A stretch of DNA of 64,000 bases, from sequence record OQ363659.1. The stretch is one strand, 5' to 3'. A program made the translations under genes and the position numbers. Every line of letters starts with the position of its first letter. Position 1 is the stretch's first letter. The notes below the pieces were generated by a model, which worked only from the letters and a program-made list of their open reading frames with translations, was not told the origin of the DNA and did not search any database. Positions 26,363 to 62,150 of the stretch are shown here, in pieces.

Positions 26363-29300
26363 TTAGCTGGCGGTTTGAGCACCAACAGCACCGATCAACA
26401 CAGGCGAGGCACCACCGATAACCAAGAAGGTTACGACGTTGATACCAGCTTGGTAGGTCGGAGCAACACCACCGTTCCAGATCAGGTTCGAAGCAGTAAC
26501 TGCTGTACCGTTGATTTGGAAGCTGAGAGCCGCGACAGAGCCACGGACCAACAGCACCAGGGTAGTAGCACGACCAGCACCTGGGAGGTTAGTGAAGTTG
26601 ATGGTCTTAGCCACTGCACCCGTGGTGTTAGTGATATCCATCAGCTGTTGAGTAGCAGCGTTGAACGTTGCGGAAGCCGTACCAGCAGCGACAGCAGTAG
26701 ATGCTGTGTCGTAGCTATCGAAGGCAACCCAGTCCGTTGCAGTACGCAGGTACTTCTTGGCATCTGCCGGAGCATTGATACCAGTGTACTCTACCCAGTT
26801 GGTGTTCTGACCAGAACGCAGGTAAGTCTTGCCTGCTGTGGTTGGAGCTTCACCGATACCCGCGGACGGGATGACGATCTCTTTCCAGATTGGAGCGGAA
26901 CCAGCAGCTTCGTATACACGAACGTAGTTCTTACCATCTTTAACAGTCAGGTCTGCGATACCAGCAGGGACTTCAGTCCAAGCGCCATTGGTCTGACCGT
27001 TAGCACGACTGCGAGCGTAAAGCTTACCGTCAGCTGTTGGTTCAGGGAATGCAGGGAATTGGATTTCAACCCACTCGCCTTCATCCGTGGTACCAGACTT
27101 CAGTTGACGACCGTAGACCTTGCCACTTACGAGGCTCGGTACTTCATCAACCGGCAGTTTGACCCAGTCGCTACCCAGACGTACAACCTTACCGAGGTTA
27201 GGCAGTGGTGAGTTAACGTCACCAGCAACCAGACGGCCCATTTGCAGCCAGCCGGAGGTGTTGTCTTTGTAGAAGGTATCGAACTGTGCGTTAACAGCCC
27301 AGTCACCTGCACGACCGTAGTCTGGGGTAGGTTCGAACACGCCGTTAGGCAGTACCAGCCACAGAGAACCACGCTCACCGGTATTACCAGTGTTACCTTT
27401 CAGACCAGTCTTACCCTGAATACCTTGTTCACCCTGAGGGCCACGAACAGGACCAGCGTTGAACCACTCAGTGGCACCACCGACAGGATTGATACCGTAC
27501 AGGTACAGATCGCTACCAACCAGGTAACCTTCACCGGCAGTACCGGTTGGGTGTGCAGCTTTCAGAGCGGACTCAGTAGCGTACGAACCCATGATAGTGA
27601 TCGAGGTACCGGCAGGGCCTTGAATACCCTGTTCGCCATCTTCGCCTTTCTCACCACGCAGGTAGATACCTGGGTTGTAAACACCAGCGTCGTTGACTTG
27701 GTACAGGCGACCATCTTCTTGGGTGTAGTAAGCATCGCCTACTTCCAAGGTCGATGGATCTGGCAGGTTAGCGATCAGATCGACTTCACCTTTGATGTTC
27801 AGGCCAGGACCCGCAGGACCGACCGCACCATCTACACCGTCAGTACCATCGGTACCGTTGTTACCAGTCTCACCTTTGTCACCCTTATCGCCTTTGAATT
27901 GACCCAGGTTGACCCAAGCACCAGAGATCCACATGTAGAGGATACCAGTGTCCAGAGTGGTGTAGGCATCTTGTTCAGCTGCACCAACAGGCAGAGCCGC
28001 TTGGTTAGCTACAGAGCCTTTGATGACAACGTTGCGACCATTGGTGCCGTCCGTACCATCTGCGCCGTCTGCACCTTTCAGCGTAGCCAGGAATTCTGCC
28101 TCGGTACCGCTGTTACCAGCGTCGAGCCAGATTTGGTAGACAGACTTACCATCAACACCATCCGTACCATCTGCGCCGTCTTCACCACGGAAAGGACCAG
28201 CATCGATCCAAGCGCTAGTGGCGTAGATGTGCAGGTGACCAGTATCCAGTGCAACCCATGCATCTTGGTCAGCTGGAGTTGGCAGGGCCTGAATAGCAGC
28301 CAGGTTAGCCTGGGTACCTTTGACTTGCAGGTTACGACCGTCAGTACCATCGGTACCATCAACGCCGTTGGTGCCCTTCAAGGAAGCCAACCAAACATCT
28401 TCAGTACCTACGAAACCATTTTCAACCGCGATGTCGTATGCCGACTTACCGTTCAGGGAACCGAAGTTGACGTAATCAGAATTCGCAGGAGTGGTTTCAT
28501 CAACAATCCAGATGTACAGATCGCTGCCCACGTAGTAGGCTTCAGCTGGGGTACCCGGACGTGGCAGTTCCGATTCATTGGTCAGACGACCTTTGATCTC
28601 AAACGCCAGTGCAGGATCACCTTTATCGCCTTCATCACCTTTCAGAGATGCCAGCCACTGTACTTCAGTACCGACAAAACCATTGGCTACAGCTACTGCG
28701 TAAGCAGAGTCCCCGTCATCACCTTTCTCACCATCGATACCATTAGTACCGTTAGTGCCATCAGTACCGCGGTCACCCTTAGTACCTTTCAGCGAAGCGA
28801 TGAAGTCAGACTCAGTACCAGTGTTGCCAATATCCAACCAGCTTTGGTAAGCAGACTTACCAACAGGACCAGGTACACCGATGTCCACCCAACGACGGGT
28901 AGGTTGTTCAACCAGCGTCCACAGAGAGCTACGCCATACGTACGTGTCACCAGCTTTGTAGTTCACGTCGAGTGGCAGCTCAGCACCAGTGGGCCATTCA
29001 CCCAGATAGTTCAGACCACGACCTTCAGGACCTTGCATCGAGTTAGACTTAACCCATGCAGTACCATTCCAGACATGCAGGAAAGTATCAACGATGTAAG
29101 CATCACCTACAACGGATTCACCCAAGTCAACCACTTCTTGGAATTGTTCTTCCGAGATAGTGTCGATAACATTCAGGCCTTGACCGATGTCCCCTTTCTC
29201 ACCAACTAGACTTTCCAGCCATTGTTGCAGGGTACCTACGAAACCATCATCTACAGCAACCTGATAGGCCGAATCACCATCTGCACCTTTCAGTGCATTA

Positions 29301-30478
29301 AGGAAGTCAGCTTCAGTTTTACCTGCGTTACCAGGCTGAGCCAACCACAGCTCGAAAGCAGATTGGCCATCCTCGCCATCAACACCGTCCGTGCCGTTGG
29401 TACCATCGTCGCCTTTATCGCCTTTCAGCGAGGCAATCCAAGCAGCTTCGGTGGTCAGGGATGGGTCCAGTTCTTTAGCGATCTCGAATGCAGACTTACC
29501 GTCTTCACCATCCGTACCGTTAGTACCATTGGTACCGTCAGAACCTTCCAGGCTTTCCAGGAACTGTGCTTCAGTACCGCTGTTACCAGCGTCGAGCCAC
29601 AGTTGATAAGCCGATGCACCTTCCAACGATTTCAAGTAATCGGATTCAGAACCTACGAAGCCTGCATCTTTAGCGGCTTCATAAGCAGACTTACCAGTCT
29701 CACCTTTCAGAGATGCAATGAAGGCTGCTTCGTCCACGAGAGACGGATCTTCTTCTTTTGCGATATCGAAGGCGGACTTACCTTCCAGCGACTTGAGGTA
29801 TTCTTCTTCAGTGCCTACGAAACCAGCTTTAACAGCAGCTTCATATGCGGATTCACCAGTTTCACCTTTCTGTGCGGCCAGGTACTCTGCTTCGGTCTTA
29901 CCGGCATTACCCGGTTGGGATTGCCAGACCTCAAAAGCAGACTTACCGTCAGGGCCAATCGGACCGATGTCGCCGTCTTTACCAGCGTCGCCGGTATCAC
30001 CCTTGGCACCTTTCAAAGAAAGTAACCATTGTGCTTCTGTACCAACATAACCTTGCTCTACGGCAGTTTGATAAGCCGATTTACCAACCAAAGTTTTTAG
30101 GAAGTCAGCTTCAGTACCGATGAAGCCATTACGTAGAGCGACATCATAGATCGACTCACCTACTTCACCCTCATCGCCTTTCAGCGACGCGATGAATGCG
30201 GCCTCATCACCCACAAAGCCCAGATCGACTGCGATCTGATAAGCGGACTTACCTTCTAACGAGACAAGCCATTGTTCAACAGTGCCTACGTAGCCGTTCT
30301 GGACAGCAATCTCGTAAGCGGACAGACCTGCGTTATTGCGGATCTTGGAAACTAATAGACGGTAGTTTTTATACGTACCATCCGCTTCCATGCGGATAAC
30401 TTCCAGAAACTCATCGCCACCGATACTCAGTAGCGAATCCATTCCAGAGATCATACCCTTCTTATTTGACTCTGCCAT
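26363..30478 (-). CDS. Long collagen-like fibre protein (1371 aa)
   Basis: About 20 GKSAY..A...GF.G.E..WL.SL repeats, Gly-X-Y runs, repeated small beta knobs, foldon-like repeats near the C-terminus. Confidence 0.88.
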   Translation of the reverse strand: MAESNKKGMISGMDSLLSIGGDEFLEVIRMEADGTYKNYRLLVSKIRNNAGLSAYEIAVQNGYVGTVEQWLVSLEGKSAYQIAVDLGFVGDEAAFIASLKGDEGEVGESIYDVALRNGFIGTEADFLKTLVGKSAYQTAVEQGYVGTEAQWLLSLKGAKGDTGDAGKDGDIGPIGPDGKSAFEVWQSQPGNAGKTEAEYLAAQKGETGESAYEAAVKAGFVGTEEEYLKSLEGKSAFDIAKEEDPSLVDEAAFIASLKGETGKSAYEAAKDAGFVGSESDYLKSLEGASAYQLWLDAGNSGTEAQFLESLEGSDGTNGTNGTDGEDGKSAFEIAKELDPSLTTEAAWIASLKGDKGDDGTNGTDGVDGEDGQSAFELWLAQPGNAGKTEADFLNALKGADGDSAYQVAVDDGFVGTLQQWLESLVGEKGDIGQGLNVIDTISEEQFQEVVDLGESVVGDAYIVDTFLHVWNGTAWVKSNSMQGPEGRGLNYLGEWPTGAELPLDVNYKAGDTYVWRSSLWTLVEQPTRRWVDIGVPGPVGKSAYQSWLDIGNTGTESDFIASLKGTKGDRGTDGTNGTNGIDGEKGDDGDSAYAVAVANGFVGTEVQWLASLKGDEGDKGDPALAFEIKGRLTNESELPRPGTPAEAYYVGSDLYIWIVDETTPANSDYVNFGSLNGKSAYDIAVENGFVGTEDVWLASLKGTNGVDGTDGTDGRNLQVKGTQANLAAIQALPTPADQDAWVALDTGHLHIYATSAWIDAGPFRGEDGADGTDGVDGKSVYQIWLDAGNSGTEAEFLATLKGADGADGTDGTNGRNVVIKGSVANQAALPVGAAEQDAYTTLDTGILYMWISGAWVNLGQFKGDKGDKGETGNNGTDGTDGVDGAVGPAGPGLNIKGEVDLIANLPDPSTLEVGDAYYTQEDGRLYQVNDAGVYNPGIYLRGEKGEDGEQGIQGPAGTSITIMGSYATESALKAAHPTGTAGEGYLVGSDLYLYGINPVGGATEWFNAGPVRGPQGEQGIQGKTGLKGNTGNTGERGSLWLVLPNGVFEPTPDYGRAGDWAVNAQFDTFYKDNTSGWLQMGRLVAGDVNSPLPNLGKVVRLGSDWVKLPVDEVPSLVSGKVYGRQLKSGTTDEGEWVEIQFPAFPEPTADGKLYARSRANGQTNGAWTEVPAGIADLTVKDGKNYVRVYEAAGSAPIWKEIVIPSAGIGEAPTTAGKTYLRSGQNTNWVEYTGINAPADAKKYLRTATDWVAFDSYDTASTAVAAGTASATFNAATQQLMDITNTTGAVAKTINFTNLPGAGRATTLVLLVRGSVAALSFQINGTAVTASNLIWNGGVAPTYQAGINVVTFLVIGGASPVLIGAVGAQTAS

Positions 30479-30583
30479 CGCGATGTTCCTTTAAAAGAGA
30501 GCCTTAGTAAAATCAACCGGTCGTCTTACTAAAACTAGAATAAGACTCATACAGTAGGTAAAAAATTACTGAGACGGCATAAA

Positions 30584-30601
30584 GGAAACCCGAAGGTTTC
30601 C
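30584..30601 (-). terminator. Intrinsic terminator
   Basis: GGAAACC-TTCG-GGTTTCC then TTTATGCC. Confidence 0.8.
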
Positions 30602-30608
30602 CCTATGT

Positions 30609-31145
30609 TTACGGCTGTACTACACCAGCGTCGAGTTTCCAATCGCCATTGCCATCTTTGGTAAAGCCGATGTCAGTCAGCAGTGCCAGGAGAGAAGCAG
30701 AGGTAGCGAACTTTGCATCGTCCGTACCAGCGATCAGTTCAGCGCCAGTTGCTTTCACCGGTACATCACCAGCGTCAGCTTTAGCATCCAATGCATCTTG
30801 CAGGTCAGTGACCTTCGAGATATCCAGGTCTGGTACTTGTGCCACTGGTACTTTGCCAGCTACCAGAGAAGCAACACTAGTACCTACGTCAGTGGTCTTA
30901 ACGGTAGCAGCCAGAGCTGCATCCAGACCATCGATGTCGGCAGTAGTCAGAGTCTGTGCATCCAGCTTATCATCGATAAGTTGGTTAACAGCAGCAGTGC
31001 TCAGGCCACCTACTAGCGAACCACCCGCAGTGACACCGTCATGCACGTAAACCAGTTTGGTAGTTAGGTCAACGAAGAGCGAGCCTTCAGCGCCTACCCA
31101 AGCAGCGGCTTGTGCAGTAGTACCACGTTTGAATTGAATAACCAT
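30609..31145 (-). CDS. Short fibre protein with Mtd/hyaluronidase-like N-terminal motif
   Basis: IQFKRGT...GSLFVD...VHDGVTAGG; IDGLDAAL and VTDLQDALDAK tail repeats. Confidence 0.7.
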   Translation of the reverse strand: MVIQFKRGTTAQAAAWVGAEGSLFVDLTTKLVYVHDGVTAGGSLVGGLSTAAVNQLIDDKLDAQTLTTADIDGLDAALAATVKTTDVGTSVASLVAGKVPVAQVPDLDISKVTDLQDALDAKADAGDVPVKATGAELIAGTDDAKFATSASLLALLTDIGFTKDGNGDWKLDAGVVQP

Positions 31146-31168
31146 GATCAGTTCCTTCTATGGAATTA

Positions 31169-31762
31169 TTACGGCGTTACGCGACCTTCGTCAAAGACGA
31201 TGTCTTTCATATCGCTTGTATACCGAATACCCGGAAGTGCCAGAAGCACTTTCATTACTTCGGTAGTCGTCCGAGACCGCAGGAGATACCGAGCGAACTC
31301 AGTCTTCTGTGGTTCGGACACAGGCTTATCCTTGTCCAAGGTATTGTCGATCTGATCAAGACCGACGTCAGCAGGTGTGAGTTCTTTAAAGACACCCACA
31401 CCGTCTGCATCTGCTGTCAATACCTGCCCAGCTTTTGCAGCATCGTGTTCGTACAGAGCTTTCACCGATTGAACCCATTCGGATTCAGTGCCGGTGAACT
31501 CGCCAATACGAACAGCGGTTTGGTAAGCTGATTCGCCAACCAGCGTTTTCAGCCATTCAGCCTCTGTTCCAACAAAGCCGTTCGTCACAGCCAGGTCATA
31601 TGCAGTTTTACCTACACGGAGCTTAGAAGCCAATGTACGATAGTTCTTATAAGAACCATCTGGCATCAGCCGAACAACTTCTACGAATTCATCCCCTGAA
31701 AGACTCAGCAGAGATTCAAACCCAGAAATCATACTTTTGTTTACGGCGTTAGTCTCAGCCAT
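31169..31762 (-). CDS. Short fibre protein sharing its N-terminus with the 1371-aa fibre
   Basis: MISGFESLLSLSGDEFVEVVR...YKNYR, SAY repeats, DVGLDQIDNTLDKDKPVS repeat. Confidence 0.75.
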   Translation of the reverse strand: MAETNAVNKSMISGFESLLSLSGDEFVEVVRLMPDGSYKNYRTLASKLRVGKTAYDLAVTNGFVGTEAEWLKTLVGESAYQTAVRIGEFTGTESEWVQSVKALYEHDAAKAGQVLTADADGVGVFKELTPADVGLDQIDNTLDKDKPVSEPQKTEFARYLLRSRTTTEVMKVLLALPGIRYTSDMKDIVFDEGRVTP

Positions 31763-31790
31763 GACTAGATCCTTTTCTTACATAGAATTG

Positions 31791-32567
31791 TCAGCCCCGA
31801 TGGGCTGCAACTTTGGATTCGAACAGTTTGATGATCGCACCGATCGTCAACGGAGTCTTCTTATCACGGGCGTAGAAGATACCGACGTTAGCTGCTGCTT
31901 GGCGTGGGAACAACTCTGCACCAAGTGCTGATTGATCAGCTAGTAAGAATTTCTTAGCCGTACCAGCACCAAAGAAGTGCGCAGCATACAACTCAGTATC
32001 CGTTGGTTCACGACCCAGGCCTTGACGCAGAATACGCGCGTTGTCTTTCAGGAACTCAGCACCCATCAAGCCATTAGCTCGTGGGTCAGTTCGCAAACTA
32101 CGACGAGCGTTATCCTTCAGTGCGTACTTGCCGAACGTTTGCGTCAGGATGTCATCCCAAGTCTTATCTAAGAATTGGAACCAACCTGTAGCACTAGAGG
32201 TCGAAGCTTTCACCGTGTAATCGAAGTTAGATTCGATCGATGCGAAGGTAGCCAACAGAGTTGGACTTACACCCGTAATCTTTCCAATTGCTTCTAAGGT
32301 CGGCATGGCAGCGGAGCGTGACCGATTAGCCTTAGGCATTGGGATAGGATCTAGGACTGAACTTTGCACTAGTCCCAACGCAGTCAGCGTTGCGTTACCA
32401 GCAATACCATCCGCTACCAGGTTAGTGGCTTTCTGGAAAGCAACCACTGCGTTATACGTTGCTGGACCAAACTGACCATCGGCTACGAGTTTGTATCCTT
32501 TACGCACTAATGCTTCCTGCAATTTGCGAACGGAGTCGCTAGTGTCACCTTGTTTTAAAGCAGCCAT
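31791..32567 (-). CDS. Modular endolysin: peptidoglycan-binding domain plus lytic transglycosylase (KZ144-like)
   Basis: LKQGD...LQEAL...DGQFGPATYNAVVAFQ...DGIAG; IESNFD catalytic Glu, ATGWFQF, YAAHFFG. Confidence 0.93.
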   Translation of the reverse strand: MAALKQGDTSDSVRKLQEALVRKGYKLVADGQFGPATYNAVVAFQKATNLVADGIAGNATLTALGLVQSSVLDPIPMPKANRSRSAAMPTLEAIGKITGVSPTLLATFASIESNFDYTVKASTSSATGWFQFLDKTWDDILTQTFGKYALKDNARRSLRTDPRANGLMGAEFLKDNARILRQGLGREPTDTELYAAHFFGAGTAKKFLLADQSALGAELFPRQAAANVGIFYARDKKTPLTIGAIIKLFESKVAAHRG

Positions 32568-32576
32568 GTTAATACC

Positions 32577-33116
32577 TCAGCGGTGCTCGAGTTCTCGGAT
32601 TTCTCCATTTTCCAGTTGGCGCATGTCACCATCTTCCAGGTAACGCGCAAATGGATTCGCATCAATCACATCTACAATGATGTCGGTCTCGCCGTAGTAA
32701 GGGTAGCTACCTGTCATTGCCTTCAGGCGATAGACAAATGAAGCCTCACTGTTTTCAATAACGACTGTAGAGAATGAAATGTCATCAGGGCCGAAAGACA
32801 TCTTCCGACTACGATTGATTTCAGCAGCGATATTAGCCGGGGTTGGAAGCCCCACAATTTTGATTCTTGTGCTCGTGCCTAGTACCTTTGGGTGTGCCAA
32901 ATCCAGACGACGATATACGAAGAATTCTTTAAGCCCCGTAAGGAGGTTGGTCATCTCAATAAAGGTACGGCCAGGGATGGCAGGCAGAGGGGCAAAGAAC
33001 ATGTCCTCAAAGCTAACTTGATTAGGTTTATAGTTCCTTTTCAAGTCATGGTTCACCTGCGCCACGAGTGCATCGCGGGAAGGCGTATCAAACGGGAAAC
33101 GATCTGTTGTGATCAT
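32577..33116 (-). CDS. Virion structural protein ending in an R-x-L-E-[DN]-G repeat
   Basis: FVYRRLDL block shared with 50516 and 51402; C-terminus ARYLEDGDMRQLENGEIRELEHR. Confidence 0.7.
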   Translation of the reverse strand: MITTDRFPFDTPSRDALVAQVNHDLKRNYKPNQVSFEDMFFAPLPAIPGRTFIEMTNLLTGLKEFFVYRRLDLAHPKVLGTSTRIKIVGLPTPANIAAEINRSRKMSFGPDDISFSTVVIENSEASFVYRLKAMTGSYPYYGETDIIVDVIDANPFARYLEDGDMRQLENGEIRELEHR

Positions 33117-50515: not shown

Positions 50516-51394
50516 ATGTACATCACACAAGACTACCTAAAGGTAGGGTCGTGGCAAGCTGTCATCGACATGATCAATGACAAGTATAACTTCCAACTCC
50601 AACCCGGAATTGTGAAGCTAAAAGAAATGAAAGCTTTGGGTCCCAAAAGGACCCAGATCGAAATCATTCCTAATCGGTCAACCAATCCGATTAACTTGAT
50701 GCCTGAGATCACTGAAACGATCTTCACCTACGATCGACTGGACTGCACTGAGTTCTTCCGTAACACAGTGGCGGTTAACATCAGTGGAATGAAGCTCCCG
50801 ATCACTACGTTCGATATCCTGAACTACATCGGTGCTAAGAATGAGATCGTGTTTGAGGTTGACGACTTCATTCACCAAACTTTCGATCACTACAGTGCTA
50901 TTGGTGAGGCTGACTTCGTTATCAAGGCTGACCCACGTTCCCTGCGATTTGTAGGGAGTCTAAAGGTTCGGTTAACCAACACGTTGAAGTTTGATCTGAC
51001 TACGCTATCAGGTCAAAGCTTTGAATTCCCGGATGTAGCGCAGCAACATGACAAGTTATTCATCAATGGTAACTTCGAAATGAATCGTTTCGACTTTACT
51101 GAACAACGTGAATTGTTGCGTAGTATTCCAGTTGGGTTGTACCATGATCCGGGTAAGGTAGCTCAGGCTATAAGTCGGCAGACCACGCAGGTATACTCAG
51201 TCAAGCCTACGCCCGCTACGCGCTCACTGGTGCACACTTTAGTTCAAGGTGAGCCACACTGTAAGGTTCTGTATAACGGCGCTCCTATCCCGCGATGGAC
51301 GTCTCGTACGGACTGTCAAAGGGTGATCGTAATCGAACTGAACACGACGTACTGCACGAGTGTCAGTGGTTATCTTCGTCTGCATTATAACTGA
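50516..51394 (+). CDS. Virion structural protein (phiKZ gp127-like)
   Basis: FTYDRLD block; 292 aa. Confidence 0.7.
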   Translation: MYITQDYLKVGSWQAVIDMINDKYNFQLQPGIVKLKEMKALGPKRTQIEIIPNRSTNPINLMPEITETIFTYDRLDCTEFFRNTVAVNISGMKLPITTFDILNYIGAKNEIVFEVDDFIHQTFDHYSAIGEADFVIKADPRSLRFVGSLKVRLTNTLKFDLTTLSGQSFEFPDVAQQHDKLFINGNFEMNRFDFTEQRELLRSIPVGLYHDPGKVAQAISRQTTQVYSVKPTPATRSLVHTLVQGEPHCKVLYNGAPIPRWTSRTDCQRVIVIELNTTYCTSVSGYLRLHYN

Positions 51395-59181: not shown

Positions 59182-59208
59182 AATAGAGTCGGGTCGAGAC
59201 GCCATAAA

Positions 59209-59226
59209 GCCTACCCGAAGGTAGGC
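59209..59226 (-). terminator. Major capsid terminator
   Basis: GCCTACC-TTCG-GGTAGGC then TTTATGGC; lies 8 nt beyond the readthrough extension stop. Confidence 0.85.
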
Positions 59227-59233
59227 AGTATGA

Positions 59234-59320
59234 TTAAGCTTCTAGGTACCGTTGGGTAGTACCGTCTTCGAAGTACCGGATTGTACCGTCTTCGTATCGA
59301 CGGACTATTCCCGGATTCCT
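59234..59320 (-). other. In-frame C-terminal readthrough extension of major capsid (28 aa)
   Basis: After CCT TGA: RNPGIVRRYEDGTIRYFEDGTTQRYLEA-TAA; no start codon in frame. Confidence 0.7.
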
Positions 59321-61546
59321 TCAAGGTGCCTTAACAGCATCGATCAGTGGTTTGTTCCACTGCGATTTGCCCATCACTTCTTCCAGACCGGTGATGGTCA
59401 GGTTGATTGCGAACGGGATGTTGTTAACGTGCAGGTTGAACGGAACAGCTGCGATCTCACGAGTCACTTGCTGGCCACCACGAGTGATCGGCAGGTCGGC
59501 GATGACAGTCGACACGTAGAAGAACTGACCGAAGGACAGGATGTCGTTTTCGGTTGGGTTCTTACGAGTAGGAACGATCACCAGCTTACCATCGAACAGT
59601 TCGTTGTTGGTAGTTACCAGGTCGTACTCGAGGATTGCGCCCAGGGTACGGTCGTCGCCTTGAGTCATCAGGTAGTTACCGATTTCTTTGTCGGTAGCGA
59701 AGATGAACATTGGCTTCTCGTCTTGGTTGCCCGAGATCACACGGAACGCAGCTTCGATGTTCGATTCACGGTAGGCCGGGAACAGAATACCTTTAGCGAA
59801 GTTCAGGATGGTCGAGCAGACGTCTTGCCAGCGATCCTGAGACTTCAGGGTGTCGATGTGGTCTGGCAGGTGCAGCGAACCTTCACGGTAGGTCGGACGC
59901 ATCATGATGCTCAGGGCGCCTTCAACAGCACCGAACTTCGGACGGTCGTAACCATTACCAACAACTTCCTTCAGCTGAGCCAGGTAGTTCAGCAGACGTT
60001 TAACAGCGTTGTTGCTGTTACGGATGTTGGTGTTGACAGTCAGCGCCTTAACAACGTCGCCTGGACCTTGCTCATCCATGGTGGACATTGGCAGGGTAAC
60101 TGGGGCGTGCATTGGGATCGGGTGACGGAACTGGATCGCACGAGTTTGCAGCAGGTGACCACGCTGACGACGGTTGGTGTTGGTGAACTTCAGGTCGAGG
60201 TCGTAACCAACAACTTCCAGAGCACCGATAGCGTCTACCAGGGTTTTACCATCGCCGGATTCGATCGAGATCAGCTTACGGTCTTCGTCGACGATACGGT
60301 CGATTTCGATACCGGTAGCGCCGTAACGAGCGTCACCACGCGAGGTGGATACCGAACCGTTGAACGATACGCTGATACGAGCAGTCCACTTACGGTTAAC
60401 CAGCTCTTGCATCTGAGCCGAAACCGAACCGTCGATTGCTTTGGTGTCTTCGCCAACAACCAGGTCTTCAGAGATGAAGTCCAGTTTAGCCAGACGGGTG
60501 TCACCGATCAGACCAGGCTGGAACACAGCGGTAGGCAGACGGTCAACTACGAAGCGAATGATCTTACCGTCGAACTTGACGTACAGAGCTTTCAGGCGGC
60601 CGCTTGGGTCGATGGTGTCCGAAATGTCCAGCATGCCTTTGTTGATCAGCAGGTTGGCGTTCGAGTTACCCATCAGGTCGATCTTGACGTTCGGACGCAG
60701 AGGACCAGTAGTGATGGTCATGTTCTGTTCGTTGGTCACGGTGTGGTGCGGAACTACAGCCGGATCGGTGAAGAACTTCAGGTTGGTACCATCAGGATCT
60801 ACAGCAGGGATCAGGTCGGTGCAGTTGTCGTCCAGGATCGACGGATCACGGTAGGCTTCTACCATGTTGACTTCTTCGTTGGCCAGCTTCTGACCGGAGA
60901 CAGCGTGGTAAACGTCTTTCATTACAGCGATGTAAGGAAGGACCTGAACAACACCACCTTCTACCGGGTTAATAACGGTAGTTGGGTACAGACGTTCAGC
61001 GAACTCATCCTGACGGGAAGCTTCCAGGTTGTAGCCAACGGTGACTACGCGGAAGTCGCGCTGAGATTTTTCGTTGTAGTTTTCCAGACCCAGGTGGTCT
61101 TGGAAGACTTGCAGGGAACCAGCAGGACCAGCGAATTCGTGACGGACGTTGTGGACGTGCTCTTCGTTCGAGACGACTTCTTTAGCAACGGCACGCAGAG
61201 CTTTCTTGTAAGCTTCTGGGTCAGCACAGGCGATGGCAGCCATGGCAGCAGCGCGCTGTTGGTTCTCGGTGATGTAAGCCTTGCCCGACTTGTGGTCGAA
61301 GTGTTCGAAACCAAACTTCTTCATGGATTCGCCGATGGTGCTATACAGCTGACCAGCAGTGGCGCGACCGCTTTCGGTGATGTCACCGAAGTCTTCTTGG
61401 CTGACGAATTCTACCAGGCCTTTACCTTTGGCCAGGACGGAGTCGCCGTAGTTCTTTTCGAGATCCAGTGCACCGAGGAAGTCTTCCATCGAGAAGCGGG
61501 TGTATTGCTTCTGTGCATTATGTTTAAACAGTGAATCGAGATTCAT
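59321..61546 (-). CDS. Major capsid protein (phiKZ gp120-like)
   Basis: 741 aa, strongest codon bias; FSME, VSQE, LGLE propeptide sites; QDEFAERLYPT, TNTNRRQRG motifs; next to DnaB. Confidence 0.92.
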   Translation of the reverse strand: MNLDSLFKHNAQKQYTRFSMEDFLGALDLEKNYGDSVLAKGKGLVEFVSQEDFGDITESGRATAGQLYSTIGESMKKFGFEHFDHKSGKAYITENQQRAAAMAAIACADPEAYKKALRAVAKEVVSNEEHVHNVRHEFAGPAGSLQVFQDHLGLENYNEKSQRDFRVVTVGYNLEASRQDEFAERLYPTTVINPVEGGVVQVLPYIAVMKDVYHAVSGQKLANEEVNMVEAYRDPSILDDNCTDLIPAVDPDGTNLKFFTDPAVVPHHTVTNEQNMTITTGPLRPNVKIDLMGNSNANLLINKGMLDISDTIDPSGRLKALYVKFDGKIIRFVVDRLPTAVFQPGLIGDTRLAKLDFISEDLVVGEDTKAIDGSVSAQMQELVNRKWTARISVSFNGSVSTSRGDARYGATGIEIDRIVDEDRKLISIESGDGKTLVDAIGALEVVGYDLDLKFTNTNRRQRGHLLQTRAIQFRHPIPMHAPVTLPMSTMDEQGPGDVVKALTVNTNIRNSNNAVKRLLNYLAQLKEVVGNGYDRPKFGAVEGALSIMMRPTYREGSLHLPDHIDTLKSQDRWQDVCSTILNFAKGILFPAYRESNIEAAFRVISGNQDEKPMFIFATDKEIGNYLMTQGDDRTLGAILEYDLVTTNNELFDGKLVIVPTRKNPTENDILSFGQFFYVSTVIADLPITRGGQQVTREIAAVPFNLHVNNIPFAINLTITGLEEVMGKSQWNKPLIDAVKAP

Positions 61547-61604: not shown

Positions 61605-62150
61605 TTACTTAGCCTGCAATGCCTCTAAATAATAAGTGAACAGATTTGTCGAAGCGACACTCTCGAAAGTGCGAGTTCGCATCAGTTCGCCGATCATACT
61701 ATCAAATAATGTACGATTGGCCTTGATGGAGAGTCGAGTAGGATCGCCATTACCCGTGTGCAAACTCTTTTGCACAGCAACCCAAAGATTCTCATCTACA
61801 GGATAAAGGCTGTATTCATAGCATTCGAGGCTAGGATGTAGGCCTTTAGTTAGTGCGTTGTTGGTAATACGTCCTTCTACACGATTGTACAAATCTTGCA
61901 TCTTAAGGTTCGTAACGCCTTCTGCACTGGCTAGTTGCATGAGTCCTGTAACCGGACTACCTGCTAATTCAACTTTTGTAGCAGGACAAAACTTGAATGG
62001 GAATTTATTGATGGCGTCATGGATTGCAGCGAAATCGCTAACAGACGCAACGCTTGCCATATAGTTGATGTCAAGCAATTTGGTTAGCTGAACGCCGTCA
62101 TTACGGAAATGATCCAGCATGTCGGCGGGTAGTACTAACAGTTTGACCAT
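61605..62150 (-). CDS. Head structural protein (phiKZ gp119-like)
   Basis: 181 aa upstream of the capsid gene, TATG motifs upstream. Confidence 0.7.
   Translation of the reverse strand: MVKLLVLPADMLDHFRNDGVQLTKLLDINYMASVASVSDFAAIHDAINKFPFKFCPATKVELAGSPVTGLMQLASAEGVTNLKMQDLYNRVEGRITNNALTKGLHPSLECYEYSLYPVDENLWVAVQKSLHTGNGDPTRLSIKANRTLFDSMIGELMRTRTFESVASTNLFTYYLEALQAK

Follow-up and report, generated by a model that had tools for sequence, protein, structure and literature searches.

How do the fibres of a giant Pseudomonas phage become attached to the virion, and does a short peptide repeat shared by a small structural protein and by the sequence behind the capsid stop codon serve as their docking site? 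The question arises from a 64,000-nt stretch (the window) of record OQ363659.1, which is Pseudomonas phage D6, a 307-kb relative of phiKZ. In an initial annotation based on sequence alone, two fibre proteins were seen to begin with the same domain, and R-x-hydrophobic-E-[DN]-G repeats were seen to end both a 179-aa structural protein and the capsid readthrough product. These were proposed to be split binding partners, with the readthrough frequency setting how many collagen-like fibres decorate the head and the 179-aa protein providing a second docking site. The observation itself is confirmed by our analysis, whereas the interpretation is only partly supported: the peptide is probably the socket that fastens fibres to the particle, but the support comes from comparative genomics. 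The relevant features of the fibre region are the following.

26363-30478 (-), 1371-aa collagen-like fibre, corresponding to phiKZ gp145 and gp146 fused
30329-30478 (-), N-terminal anchor module of the 1371-aa fibre, KGMISGMDSLLSIGGDEFLEVIRMEADGTYKNYR
30609-31145 (-), 178-aa virion protein with an Mtd_N domain (Pfam, E 7e-10), which has neither the tag nor the N-module
31169-31762 (-), 197-aa short fibre-like protein, consisting of the N-module, two helical SAY..AV..GF.GTE..W repeats and a C-terminal domain of about 95 aa
31613-31762 (-), N-terminal anchor module of the 197-aa protein, KSMISGFESLLSLSGDEFVEVVRLMPDGSYKNYR
31791-32567 (-), 258-aa lytic transglycosylase (Pfam PG_binding_1 and SLT), homologue of phiKZ gp144, lying between the tag gene and the first fibre gene
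32577-33116 (-), 179-aa virion protein, homologue of phiKZ gp143, with a DUF7941-type N-terminal domain (residues about 1-151) followed by the tag
32580-32645 (-), C-terminal tag of the 179-aa protein, RYLEDGDMRQLENGEIRELEHR, three 8-residue repeats of which the last is cut short

The 1371-aa and 197-aa proteins align over their first 104 residues at 55% identity (E 2e-31), and Psa21 and phiKZ gp145 carry the same start. The long protein matches PHROG 3904 (tail fibre, E 3e-194) and Pfam Collagen (58 bits), as expected of a collagen-like tail fibre. An AlphaFold2 model of its N-module shows a predicted β-hairpin at residues 24-30 and 36-42 with pLDDT above 90, followed by helices. No Pfam domain lies on the module, a Foldseek search with the model found no similar solved fold, and sequence searches of the PDB with the 197-aa and 179-aa proteins found nothing useful.

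The 179-aa protein ends in ARYLEDGDMRQLENGEIRELEHR. It matches PHROG 2935 (E 4e-35), and phiKZ gp143 was found by tblastn at 50% identity. Against the Pfam DUF7941 model (PF25613, gathering score 27 bits) the D6 protein scores only 13.6 bits (E 0.047, profile positions 65-149 of 276) and a phiKZ-type homologue 18.7 bits, while the homologue on a jumbo contig, L044, scores 53.4 bits over positions 4-150; by profile score alone the family assignment of the D6 protein is left undecided. With an AlphaFold2 model (pLDDT 84), the Foldseek top hit is 9xqd_0, the phiKZ outer peripheral baseplate (E 2e-7, probability 1.00, TM 0.60/0.70), and hhalign against the full-length DUF7941 protein of D6 itself gives 93.3% (E 2.7e-7, residues 12-149 against 11-154). 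The reference protein is as follows.

50516-51394 (+), full-length DUF7941 protein of D6, 292 aa (Pfam DUF7941, 69.9 bits), whose linker has no tag-like repeats

The disordered linker that docks on the next protomer, with or without a C-terminal domain, is absent from the 179-aa protein: profile positions 150-276 are missing, and the tag takes the place of the linker and C-terminal domain. The tail is modeled at a pLDDT of about 70 with a short strand in each repeat, and R, E and G are invariant in an alignment of 33 tails.

The second tag lies behind the major capsid gene, where it is arranged as follows.

59321-61546 (-), major capsid protein gene (GenBank annotation), 741 aa, with its TGA stop at 59321-59323
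59237-59320 (-), 28 in-frame codons after the TGA carrying the tag, RRYEDGTIRYFEDGTTQRYLEA, followed by a second stop, TAA, at 59234-59236
59204-59226 (-), terminator-like hairpin (GCCTACC ttcg GGTAGGC) with a T-run, downstream of the extension and conserved in position in all relatives

The encoded extension reads RNPGIVRRYEDGTIRYFEDGTTQRYLEA. In both places the tag conforms to R-x-x-E-[DN]-G-x-x-R-x-x-E-[DN]-G-x-x-R-x-x-E, and its distribution exceeds chance. In a six-frame translation of the window, R-x-h-E-[DNES]-G occurs only four times, as two tandem pairs with 8-residue spacing at exactly these two sites, while shuffled windows give 0 to 3 scattered hits. In the whole genomes of D6, phiKZ and PhiPA3 the two-repeat DNA pattern hits only these two sites; in Phabio it hits only the gp143-type site, because the capsid extension there is too degenerate for the pattern. 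The reversed control gives no hits. A DNA or RNA repeat as the cause of the similarity was rejected, since the two D6 sites differ at synonymous positions and match only as peptides. A processing site for the prohead protease was likewise rejected, because the phiKZ protease motif, S/A/G-x-E, does not fit R-Y-L-E.

Is the capsid extension under selection as protein? TGA, an in-frame tag and a hairpin were found in 9 of 9 phiKZ-type phages (D6 and 8 relatives) and in 3 of 3 Noxifer-type contigs, while five distant relatives without the tag use TAA. All indels are multiples of three, and the invariant Arg, Glu, Gly and Leu positions use varied synonymous codons (Arg CGT/CGA/CGG/AGA, all four Gly codons, Leu CTA/CTG/TTA), with a pN/pS of 0.53. 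Frame and TGA are kept across lineages whose capsid C-terminal 250 residues are as little as 74% identical, and across the more divergent Noxifer type. The D6 extension contains no ATG, GTG or TTG, which rules out a separate small gene. The extension thus evolves as a peptide, although whether readthrough happens, and how often, was not measured, and no virion proteomic data were searched for the extended protein. A literature search on capsid readthrough in phiKZ found only papers on transcriptional readthrough, searches for the motif strings returned only noise, and no paper describing the system was found.

We next asked whether the tag and the fibre start travel together, a dependence that the initial annotation had made a condition of its own proposal. 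They do: tag, gp143-type carrier and N-module fibres co-occur in all Pseudomonas phiKZ-type genomes examined. A scan of viral contigs (IMG/VR) found the triple tag in 116 loci, against 7 for the reversed pattern, and 92 of 108 true peptide matches end within 6 residues of a protein's C-terminus. The carrier proteins are unrelated and include PHROG 1101/6284, 23052/6616 and 48 tail proteins, tail-tube-like proteins and 42-aa mini-ORFs that are little more than a helix plus the tag. In 46 distinct pairs on unrelated carriers the next gene, mostly within about 10 nt, starts with a “KISxL…ELxEV” module; gaps for HMM-positive neighbors run from -29 to +26 nt, mostly -4 to +12. These neighbors are fibre or spike proteins with pectate-lyase, collagen, YadA-head or other parts, so that one N-terminal module heads proteins with different distal regions. 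An HMM trained on sequences chosen without regard to tags gave 23 N-terminal hits among 5101 ORFs of the tag loci, of which 15 lie directly after a strict tag. Profile-profile comparison shows that the D6/Psa21/phiKZ starts are homologous to these modules (hhalign against the non-jumbo module, 91.9%, E 7e-7). In a more distant relative, Erwinia phage Deimos-Minion, the 178-aa gp309 ends in a degenerate three-repeat tail and is followed directly by a collagen fibre, gp308, with the module.

The two motifs lie in adjacent genes. The initial annotation held that they often sit within single phage fibre proteins, but no such fusion was found in about 240 loci. The association is also much weaker when one starts from the module: only 2 of 118 “MAxKKISEL” genes follow a strict tag, while many follow degenerate 8-residue h-L-x-E-[DN]-x repeats and many follow no tail at all. 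A tail-tube-like tag family of 10 loci has no module gene nearby, and no co-variation between tag subtype and module subtype was visible by eye in the 46 pairs.

We consider the most likely explanation, held with moderate confidence, to be that the 20-residue tag is a portable C-terminal docking peptide whose partner is the roughly 45-residue N-terminal “KISxL…ELxEV…(N)K” module that begins many phage receptor-binding fibres and spikes. In D6 this module would belong to the 1371-aa and 197-aa proteins, and the tag to the 179-aa protein, whose domain is of the kind that sits in the peripheral baseplate, and to the major capsid protein, but only when the ribosome reads through its UGA stop. A T=27 shell holds about 1600 capsid subunits, and readthrough of 0.1 to 3% would therefore put a few to a few dozen tags on each head. 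Fibres would then be fastened both to the tail periphery and, sparsely, to the head, and each of the three repeats is inferred to add a short strand to the β-hairpin of one subunit of the trimeric fibre. What our data establish are both motifs, their conservation and exclusivity, the synteny in unrelated phages, the homology of the N-modules and the fold of the carrier; binding, for which gene neighborhood is the only evidence and which was not tested, together with stoichiometry, readthrough and a location on the head, is inference.

The phiKZ data bear on this model in both directions. gp145 and gp146 are annotated as “structural head protein” in AF399011 and are unplaced in the 40-protein phiKZ atlas, while gp144 sits in the neck whisker ring (PMC13250141). 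Capsid C-terminal arms lie at the hexamer center, and the penton C-arm touches the outer protein gp244 (PMC11297242). However, neither cryo-EM paper on the phiKZ capsid or the whole virion reports head fibres or the extension. By TnSeq, phiKZ gp143 is dispensable while gp145 and gp146 are essential, so that the 179-aa protein cannot be the only anchor of an essential fibre. In addition, phiKZ gp143 has a published role as a holin-binding lysis regulator (PMC12894885).

A bolder form of the model is tentative but compatible with the data. Here the tag and module would form a universal, uncatalogued plug-and-socket code for phage fibres, with one repeat for each subunit of a trimeric fibre. phiKZ-type jumbo phages would have copied the socket behind the UGA stop of the major capsid gene, and translational readthrough would meter a sparse set of receptor-binding fibres onto the head. 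A 28-kb contig shows a second, independent TGA-appended tag, so this trick may recur.

Among the alternatives, all of which we regard as unlikely, the best surviving one is that the tag docks onto DUF7941 N-domains and not onto fibres, taking the role of the linker that joins DUF7941 protomers head to tail. The capsid extension would then seed or anchor DUF7941 filaments on the head, and gp143-type proteins would chain to one another. The fold of the carrier is consistent with this view, and the Goslar preprint reports AlphaFold head-to-tail docking of DUF7941 linkers on N-domains as well as filaments of purified gp22. However, the tag is widespread on carriers with no DUF7941, in phages outside the chimalliviruses (which alone have DUF7941, according to that preprint), and is there paired with KISxL fibres. 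Moreover, the linker of the full-length D6 DUF7941 protein has no tag-like sequence, and genome-wide the tag is absent from the other DUF7941 proteins.

Slightly less likely, the tag may serve its carrier and not a partner, as a C-terminal oligomerization or folding element or as an assembly signal of distal-tail proteins, and may sit next to fibre genes only because distal-tail genes precede fibre genes in most phages. Many carriers are indeed tail proteins that normally lie upstream of receptor-binding genes, the module often occurs without an upstream strict tag, and no co-variation was seen. Against this, the carriers are structurally unrelated (mini-ORFs, a DUF7941 domain, a tube-like protein and a capsid protein), the tag lies at the extreme C-terminus and the paired module at the extreme N-terminus of the very next gene, and in D6-type phages the tag was added to the capsid gene, far from any tail gene. 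Least likely, the extension is never made or is made only at background level with no role, and the 179-aa protein is a cytoplasmic lysis regulator whose tag serves, for example, holin control, a reading that has in its favor the experiments in which phiKZ gp143 shifts holin triggering time, its dispensability and the lack of any structure or paper reporting the extension, but against it the peptide-level conservation of the extension, the annotation of gp143-type proteins as virion structural proteins and the presence of the same tag in tail modules of unrelated phages.

Parts of the proposed system have known counterparts. In Qβ, a leaky UGA at the end of the major coat gene is followed by an in-frame extension, so that a small share of subunits (A1) carries an extra surface part needed in low copy number. 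Qβ is an ssRNA phage with a folded extension of about 200 aa, whereas D6 is a dsDNA jumbo phage with a peptide tag of 24 to 30 residues that also ends a separate virion protein and appears to be a docking site. In modular receptor-binding-protein anchors (the T7 gp17 N-domain on gp11/gp12, the T4 gp10-like branching adaptors of G7C, CBA120 and Klebsiella phages, and Dit-BppU in siphophages), a short conserved N-terminal module shared by different fibres or spikes of one phage fixes them to a defined site on the virion, and the distal receptor-binding parts can be swapped. The acceptor in those systems is a folded domain or an interface between proteins, while the acceptor proposed here is a 20-residue linear three-repeat peptide at the extreme C-terminus of unrelated carriers; neither tag nor module matches a Pfam family or a solved structure. 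The DUF7941 “fibre cloud” proteins of chimalliviruses (Goslar gp22/gp23; phiKZ gp126, gp127 and gp143) share the N-domain fold of the 179-aa carrier, which ends in the tag instead of the DUF7941 linker and C-terminal domain, and the tag is found far outside the chimalliviruses. Covalent SpyTag/SpyCatcher pairs also combine a short peptide with a small partner domain, but the D6 module has no CnaB-type domain and shows no sign of isopeptide chemistry, and a “catcher” in this sense, the term used in the initial annotation, has no support; the resemblance is one of wording only. Finally, as with the head filament of phiCbK and the capsid fibres of 7-7-1, flagellotropic phages cited in the Goslar preprint, fibres on the capsid could give a first, reversible contact with the host, and phiKZ-type phages are thought to use the flagellum. 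Attachment through a tag displayed by stop-codon readthrough is not described for those phages, and head fibres have not been seen in phiKZ-type virions.

The 2026 whole-virion atlas of phiKZ places 40 proteins but not gp143, gp145 or gp146, and where the essential gp145/gp146 fibres attach is therefore still an open question, for which a defined tag and plug gives a direct hypothesis. If the pair binds, it is a small handle of 20 aa plus 45 aa that could be used to re-target phages or to display proteins on capsids and tails. Both elements are widespread in viral contigs yet absent from Pfam, so recognizing them would improve the annotation of receptor-binding genes. The system would also show that a dsDNA phage uses stop-codon leakiness to set the copy number of a capsid decoration.

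The region is 100% identical to Pseudomonas phage D6 (OQ363659.1, 307,402 bp; host P. syringae pv. tomato DC3000), a phiKZ-type jumbo phage, and window coordinates equal those of the record minus 124,000. The genes concerned comprise a group of five on the minus strand and, on the same strand, the major capsid gene:

32577-33116, minus strand, the 179-aa protein
31791-32567, minus strand, a 258-aa lytic transglycosylase with PG_binding_1 and SLT domains, the phiKZ gp144 homologue
31169-31762, minus strand, the 197-aa protein
30609-31145, minus strand, a 178-aa protein with an Mtd_N domain
26363-30478, minus strand, the 1371-aa collagen-like fibre
59321-61546, minus strand, the major capsid gene

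The gene just upstream of the capsid gene (61605-62150, minus strand) is a clear homologue of the phiKZ vertex-binding protein gp119 (Pfam PF25619, 280 bits).

The observation made in the initial annotation, that two fibre proteins begin alike and that two structural products end in the same repeats, is confirmed. The 1371-aa and 197-aa fibre-like proteins share their first 104 residues at 55% identity (E 2e-31). A helical unit of about 25 residues, SAY(E/D)xAVxxGFxGTExEWLxSLxG, also recurs many times in the 1371-aa fibre between collagen runs and twice in the 197-aa protein; it is common in phage fibres (many PHROGs), but no Pfam model matched it here. The 179-aa protein ends ARYLEDGDMRQLENGEIRELEHR, while the capsid gene stops at TGA and runs on in frame for 28 codons, RNPGIVRRYEDGTIRYFEDGTTQRYLEA, followed by a TAA and a terminator-like hairpin. 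In six-frame translation of the window, the repeat motif (hereafter the tag) occurs only at these two places, each time as a tandem pair with 8-residue spacing. A two-repeat DNA pattern run over whole genomes hits only the capsid extension and the gp143-type C terminus in D6, phiKZ, and PhiPA3, whereas in Phabio it hits only the gp143-type site, because the capsid extension there is too degenerate for the pattern; the reversed control gives no hits. The two D6 sites differ at synonymous positions, so the similarity lies in the peptide and not in the DNA.

The capsid extension evolves as protein. Psa21, RVTF4, HPP-Temi, PhiPA3, Phabio, Viktualia, 201phi2-1, and phiKZ all end the capsid gene with TGA, followed in frame by 26 to 30 codons of the same motif and then by a hairpin, and three Noxifer-type contigs do the same. 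Length differences are always whole codons, and invariant residues use varied synonymous codons (Arg as CGT, CGA, CGG, and AGA; all four Gly codons; Leu as CTA, CTG, and TTA), with an overall pN/pS of 0.53. The D6 extension has no start codon. Readthrough itself was not measured, and our literature search found no paper that mentions the extension. In contrast, five distant chimalliviruses (Erwinia, Xanthomonas, Cronobacter, SPN3US, and Klebsiella phages) stop at TAA and have no such extension, and the tag is absent from their whole genomes. Three other distant chimalliviruses, Burkholderia phage FLC9, Ralstonia phage RP12, and Serratia phage Moabite, also end the capsid gene in TGA and have short in-frame frames of 15 to 18 codons without the R-x-x-E-D-G motif; these frames contain LDGFKVY, PDGFNEF, and LSGFDP and may represent a different readthrough tag or chance. 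A second, independent candidate for a tag appended by readthrough was found in a 27,955-bp IMG/VR contig (L064, 824-1873, minus strand), where an ORF of at least 322 aa (PHROG 24272, matched over nearly the whole profile) ends in TGA and is followed in frame by seven codons and the tag RITEDGTSRITEDGQAREIE, with no start codon; the next gene carries the KISxL module described below. An observation outside the window, at OQ363659.1 14813-14888, may also bear on the capsid stop. D6 encodes 14 tRNAs, none of which is an opal suppressor, but tRNA-Trp(CCA) and tRNA-Cys(GCA), the two near-cognate readers of UGA, are among them. As no more than a lead, the Trp tRNA has a D-stem GTTC/GAAC, giving U11-A24, the pair created by the E. 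coli Hirsh UGA-suppressor mutation (G24A), and this might raise readthrough at the capsid stop.

The 179-aa tag carrier is the homologue of phiKZ gp143, at 50% identity. Its AF2 model has a pLDDT of 84, and its best structural match is a 150-residue chain of the phiKZ outer peripheral baseplate, 9xqd_0 (E 2e-7, TM 0.60/0.70). A profile of gp143-type proteins aligns with the N-terminal half of the full-length DUF7941 protein of D6 itself (window 50516-51394) at 93%, E 3e-7. Pfam DUF7941 falls below threshold for the D6 protein but above it for a homologue, a split outcome that by itself does not place the D6 protein inside or outside the Pfam family. The carrier is therefore a DUF7941 N-domain in which the usual linker and C-domain are replaced by the tag; the canonical D6 linker has nothing tag-like. 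Published work proposes that phiKZ gp143 is a holin-binding lysis regulator (PMC12894885) and a member of the DUF7941 “fibre cloud” family (Goslar preprint), and TnSeq finds it dispensable.

The initial annotation had named co-occurrence of the two motifs across genomes as a point on which its interpretation could fail, and the key comparative result concerns this point. A scan of IMG/VR with the triple-repeat pattern returned 116 loci, against 7 for the reversed pattern. Of 108 true peptide matches, 92 lie within six residues of the C terminus of a protein, usually ending R-x-x-E. The carriers are unrelated to one another and include tail proteins of about 770 aa (PHROG 1101/6284), other tail proteins (PHROG 23052/6616 and 48), a tail-tube-like 164-aa family, 42-aa mini-ORFs, and gp143-type proteins. 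The mini-ORFs (loci L028, L042, L114, L116, and L126) consist of a hydrophobic or amphipathic stretch (MIQIAINNVIKG...) plus the tag, and each lies directly before a fibre of 225 to 770 aa that carries the module; they would be the smallest tag carriers.

In 46 distinct pairs, the very next gene begins MAxKKIS[EQ]L..A..L.G.EL.E[VI].Q.G.N.K, the KISxL module. For HMM-positive neighbours, the gaps run from -29 to +26 nt, and most lie between -4 and +12 nt. These downstream proteins are typical receptor-binding proteins with pectate-lyase spikes, collagen fibres, or YadA-head repeats. A profile of the D6, Psa21, and phiKZ gp145 starts matches a profile of these modules at 91.9%, E 7e-7, and the joint alignment has an invariant Glu and a nearly invariant Ile. 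An HMM trained on sequences picked without regard to tags gave 23 N-terminal hits among 5101 ORFs of the tag loci, of which 15 lie directly after a strict tag, while the rest lie beside tag-like ORFs. In the distant Erwinia phage Deimos-Minion, a 178-aa gp309 ends LLTESGQWLTTEDGQPLKLESVA, a degenerate three-repeat tail, and is followed directly by the collagen fibre gp308, which carries the module. Neither the tag nor the module is covered by Pfam.

The association is weaker when followed in the other direction: only 2 of 118 genes chosen by “MAxKKISEL” follow a strict tag, while many follow degenerate 8-residue h-L-x-E-[DN]-x repeats, and many follow no tail at all. No co-variation between tag and module subtypes was seen. 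We also found no fusion of tag and module in one protein in about 240 loci, and the statement in the initial annotation that the two motifs often lie within single fibre proteins therefore becomes one of adjacent genes. In addition, 10 tube-like tag carriers (loci L038, L040, L065, L072, L074, L075, L092, L109, L127, and L130), members of the family of about 164 aa (Pfam Phage_tail_2) that ends in the strict tag, are followed by a 146-aa gene that is not a fibre gene, and no module gene lies in the parts of these loci that were retrieved. If the tag is a fibre socket, these phages might carry fibres along the tail tube.

Three other explanations were considered, none of which is excluded, because binding of the tag to the module was neither modelled nor assayed. 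The idea that the partner of the tag is DUF7941 is weakened because the tag occurs widely outside the chimalliviruses and is absent from canonical DUF7941 linkers. The idea that the tag is an element intrinsic to its carrier is weakened by the diversity of carriers. The idea that the extension is not translated, or that the tag serves lysis only, is weakened by the peptide-level conservation.

The proposal that the two motifs are split binding partners is supported in part: gene neighbourhood and homology support it well, but it is unproven. Whereas the observation itself is established by the analysis, the mechanism is inferred. The AF2 model of the fibre start shows a confident beta-hairpin at residues 24-30 and 36-42, followed by helical repeats, and the tag model shows one short strand per repeat; three repeats for a trimeric fibre suggest one repeat per subunit, by strand addition. 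The phiKZ GenBank record calls gp145 and gp146 “structural head protein,” although the 2026 atlas does not place them. In phiKZ, the capsid C-arms form a bundle at the hexamer centre, and the penton C-arm touches the outer protein gp244 (PMC11297242); an extension would therefore emerge at capsomer centres. Head decoration metered by readthrough, as the initial annotation envisaged, is a reasonable but untested extension of the split-partner reading. A T=27 shell has about 1600 subunits, so sub-percent readthrough would give several tags per head.
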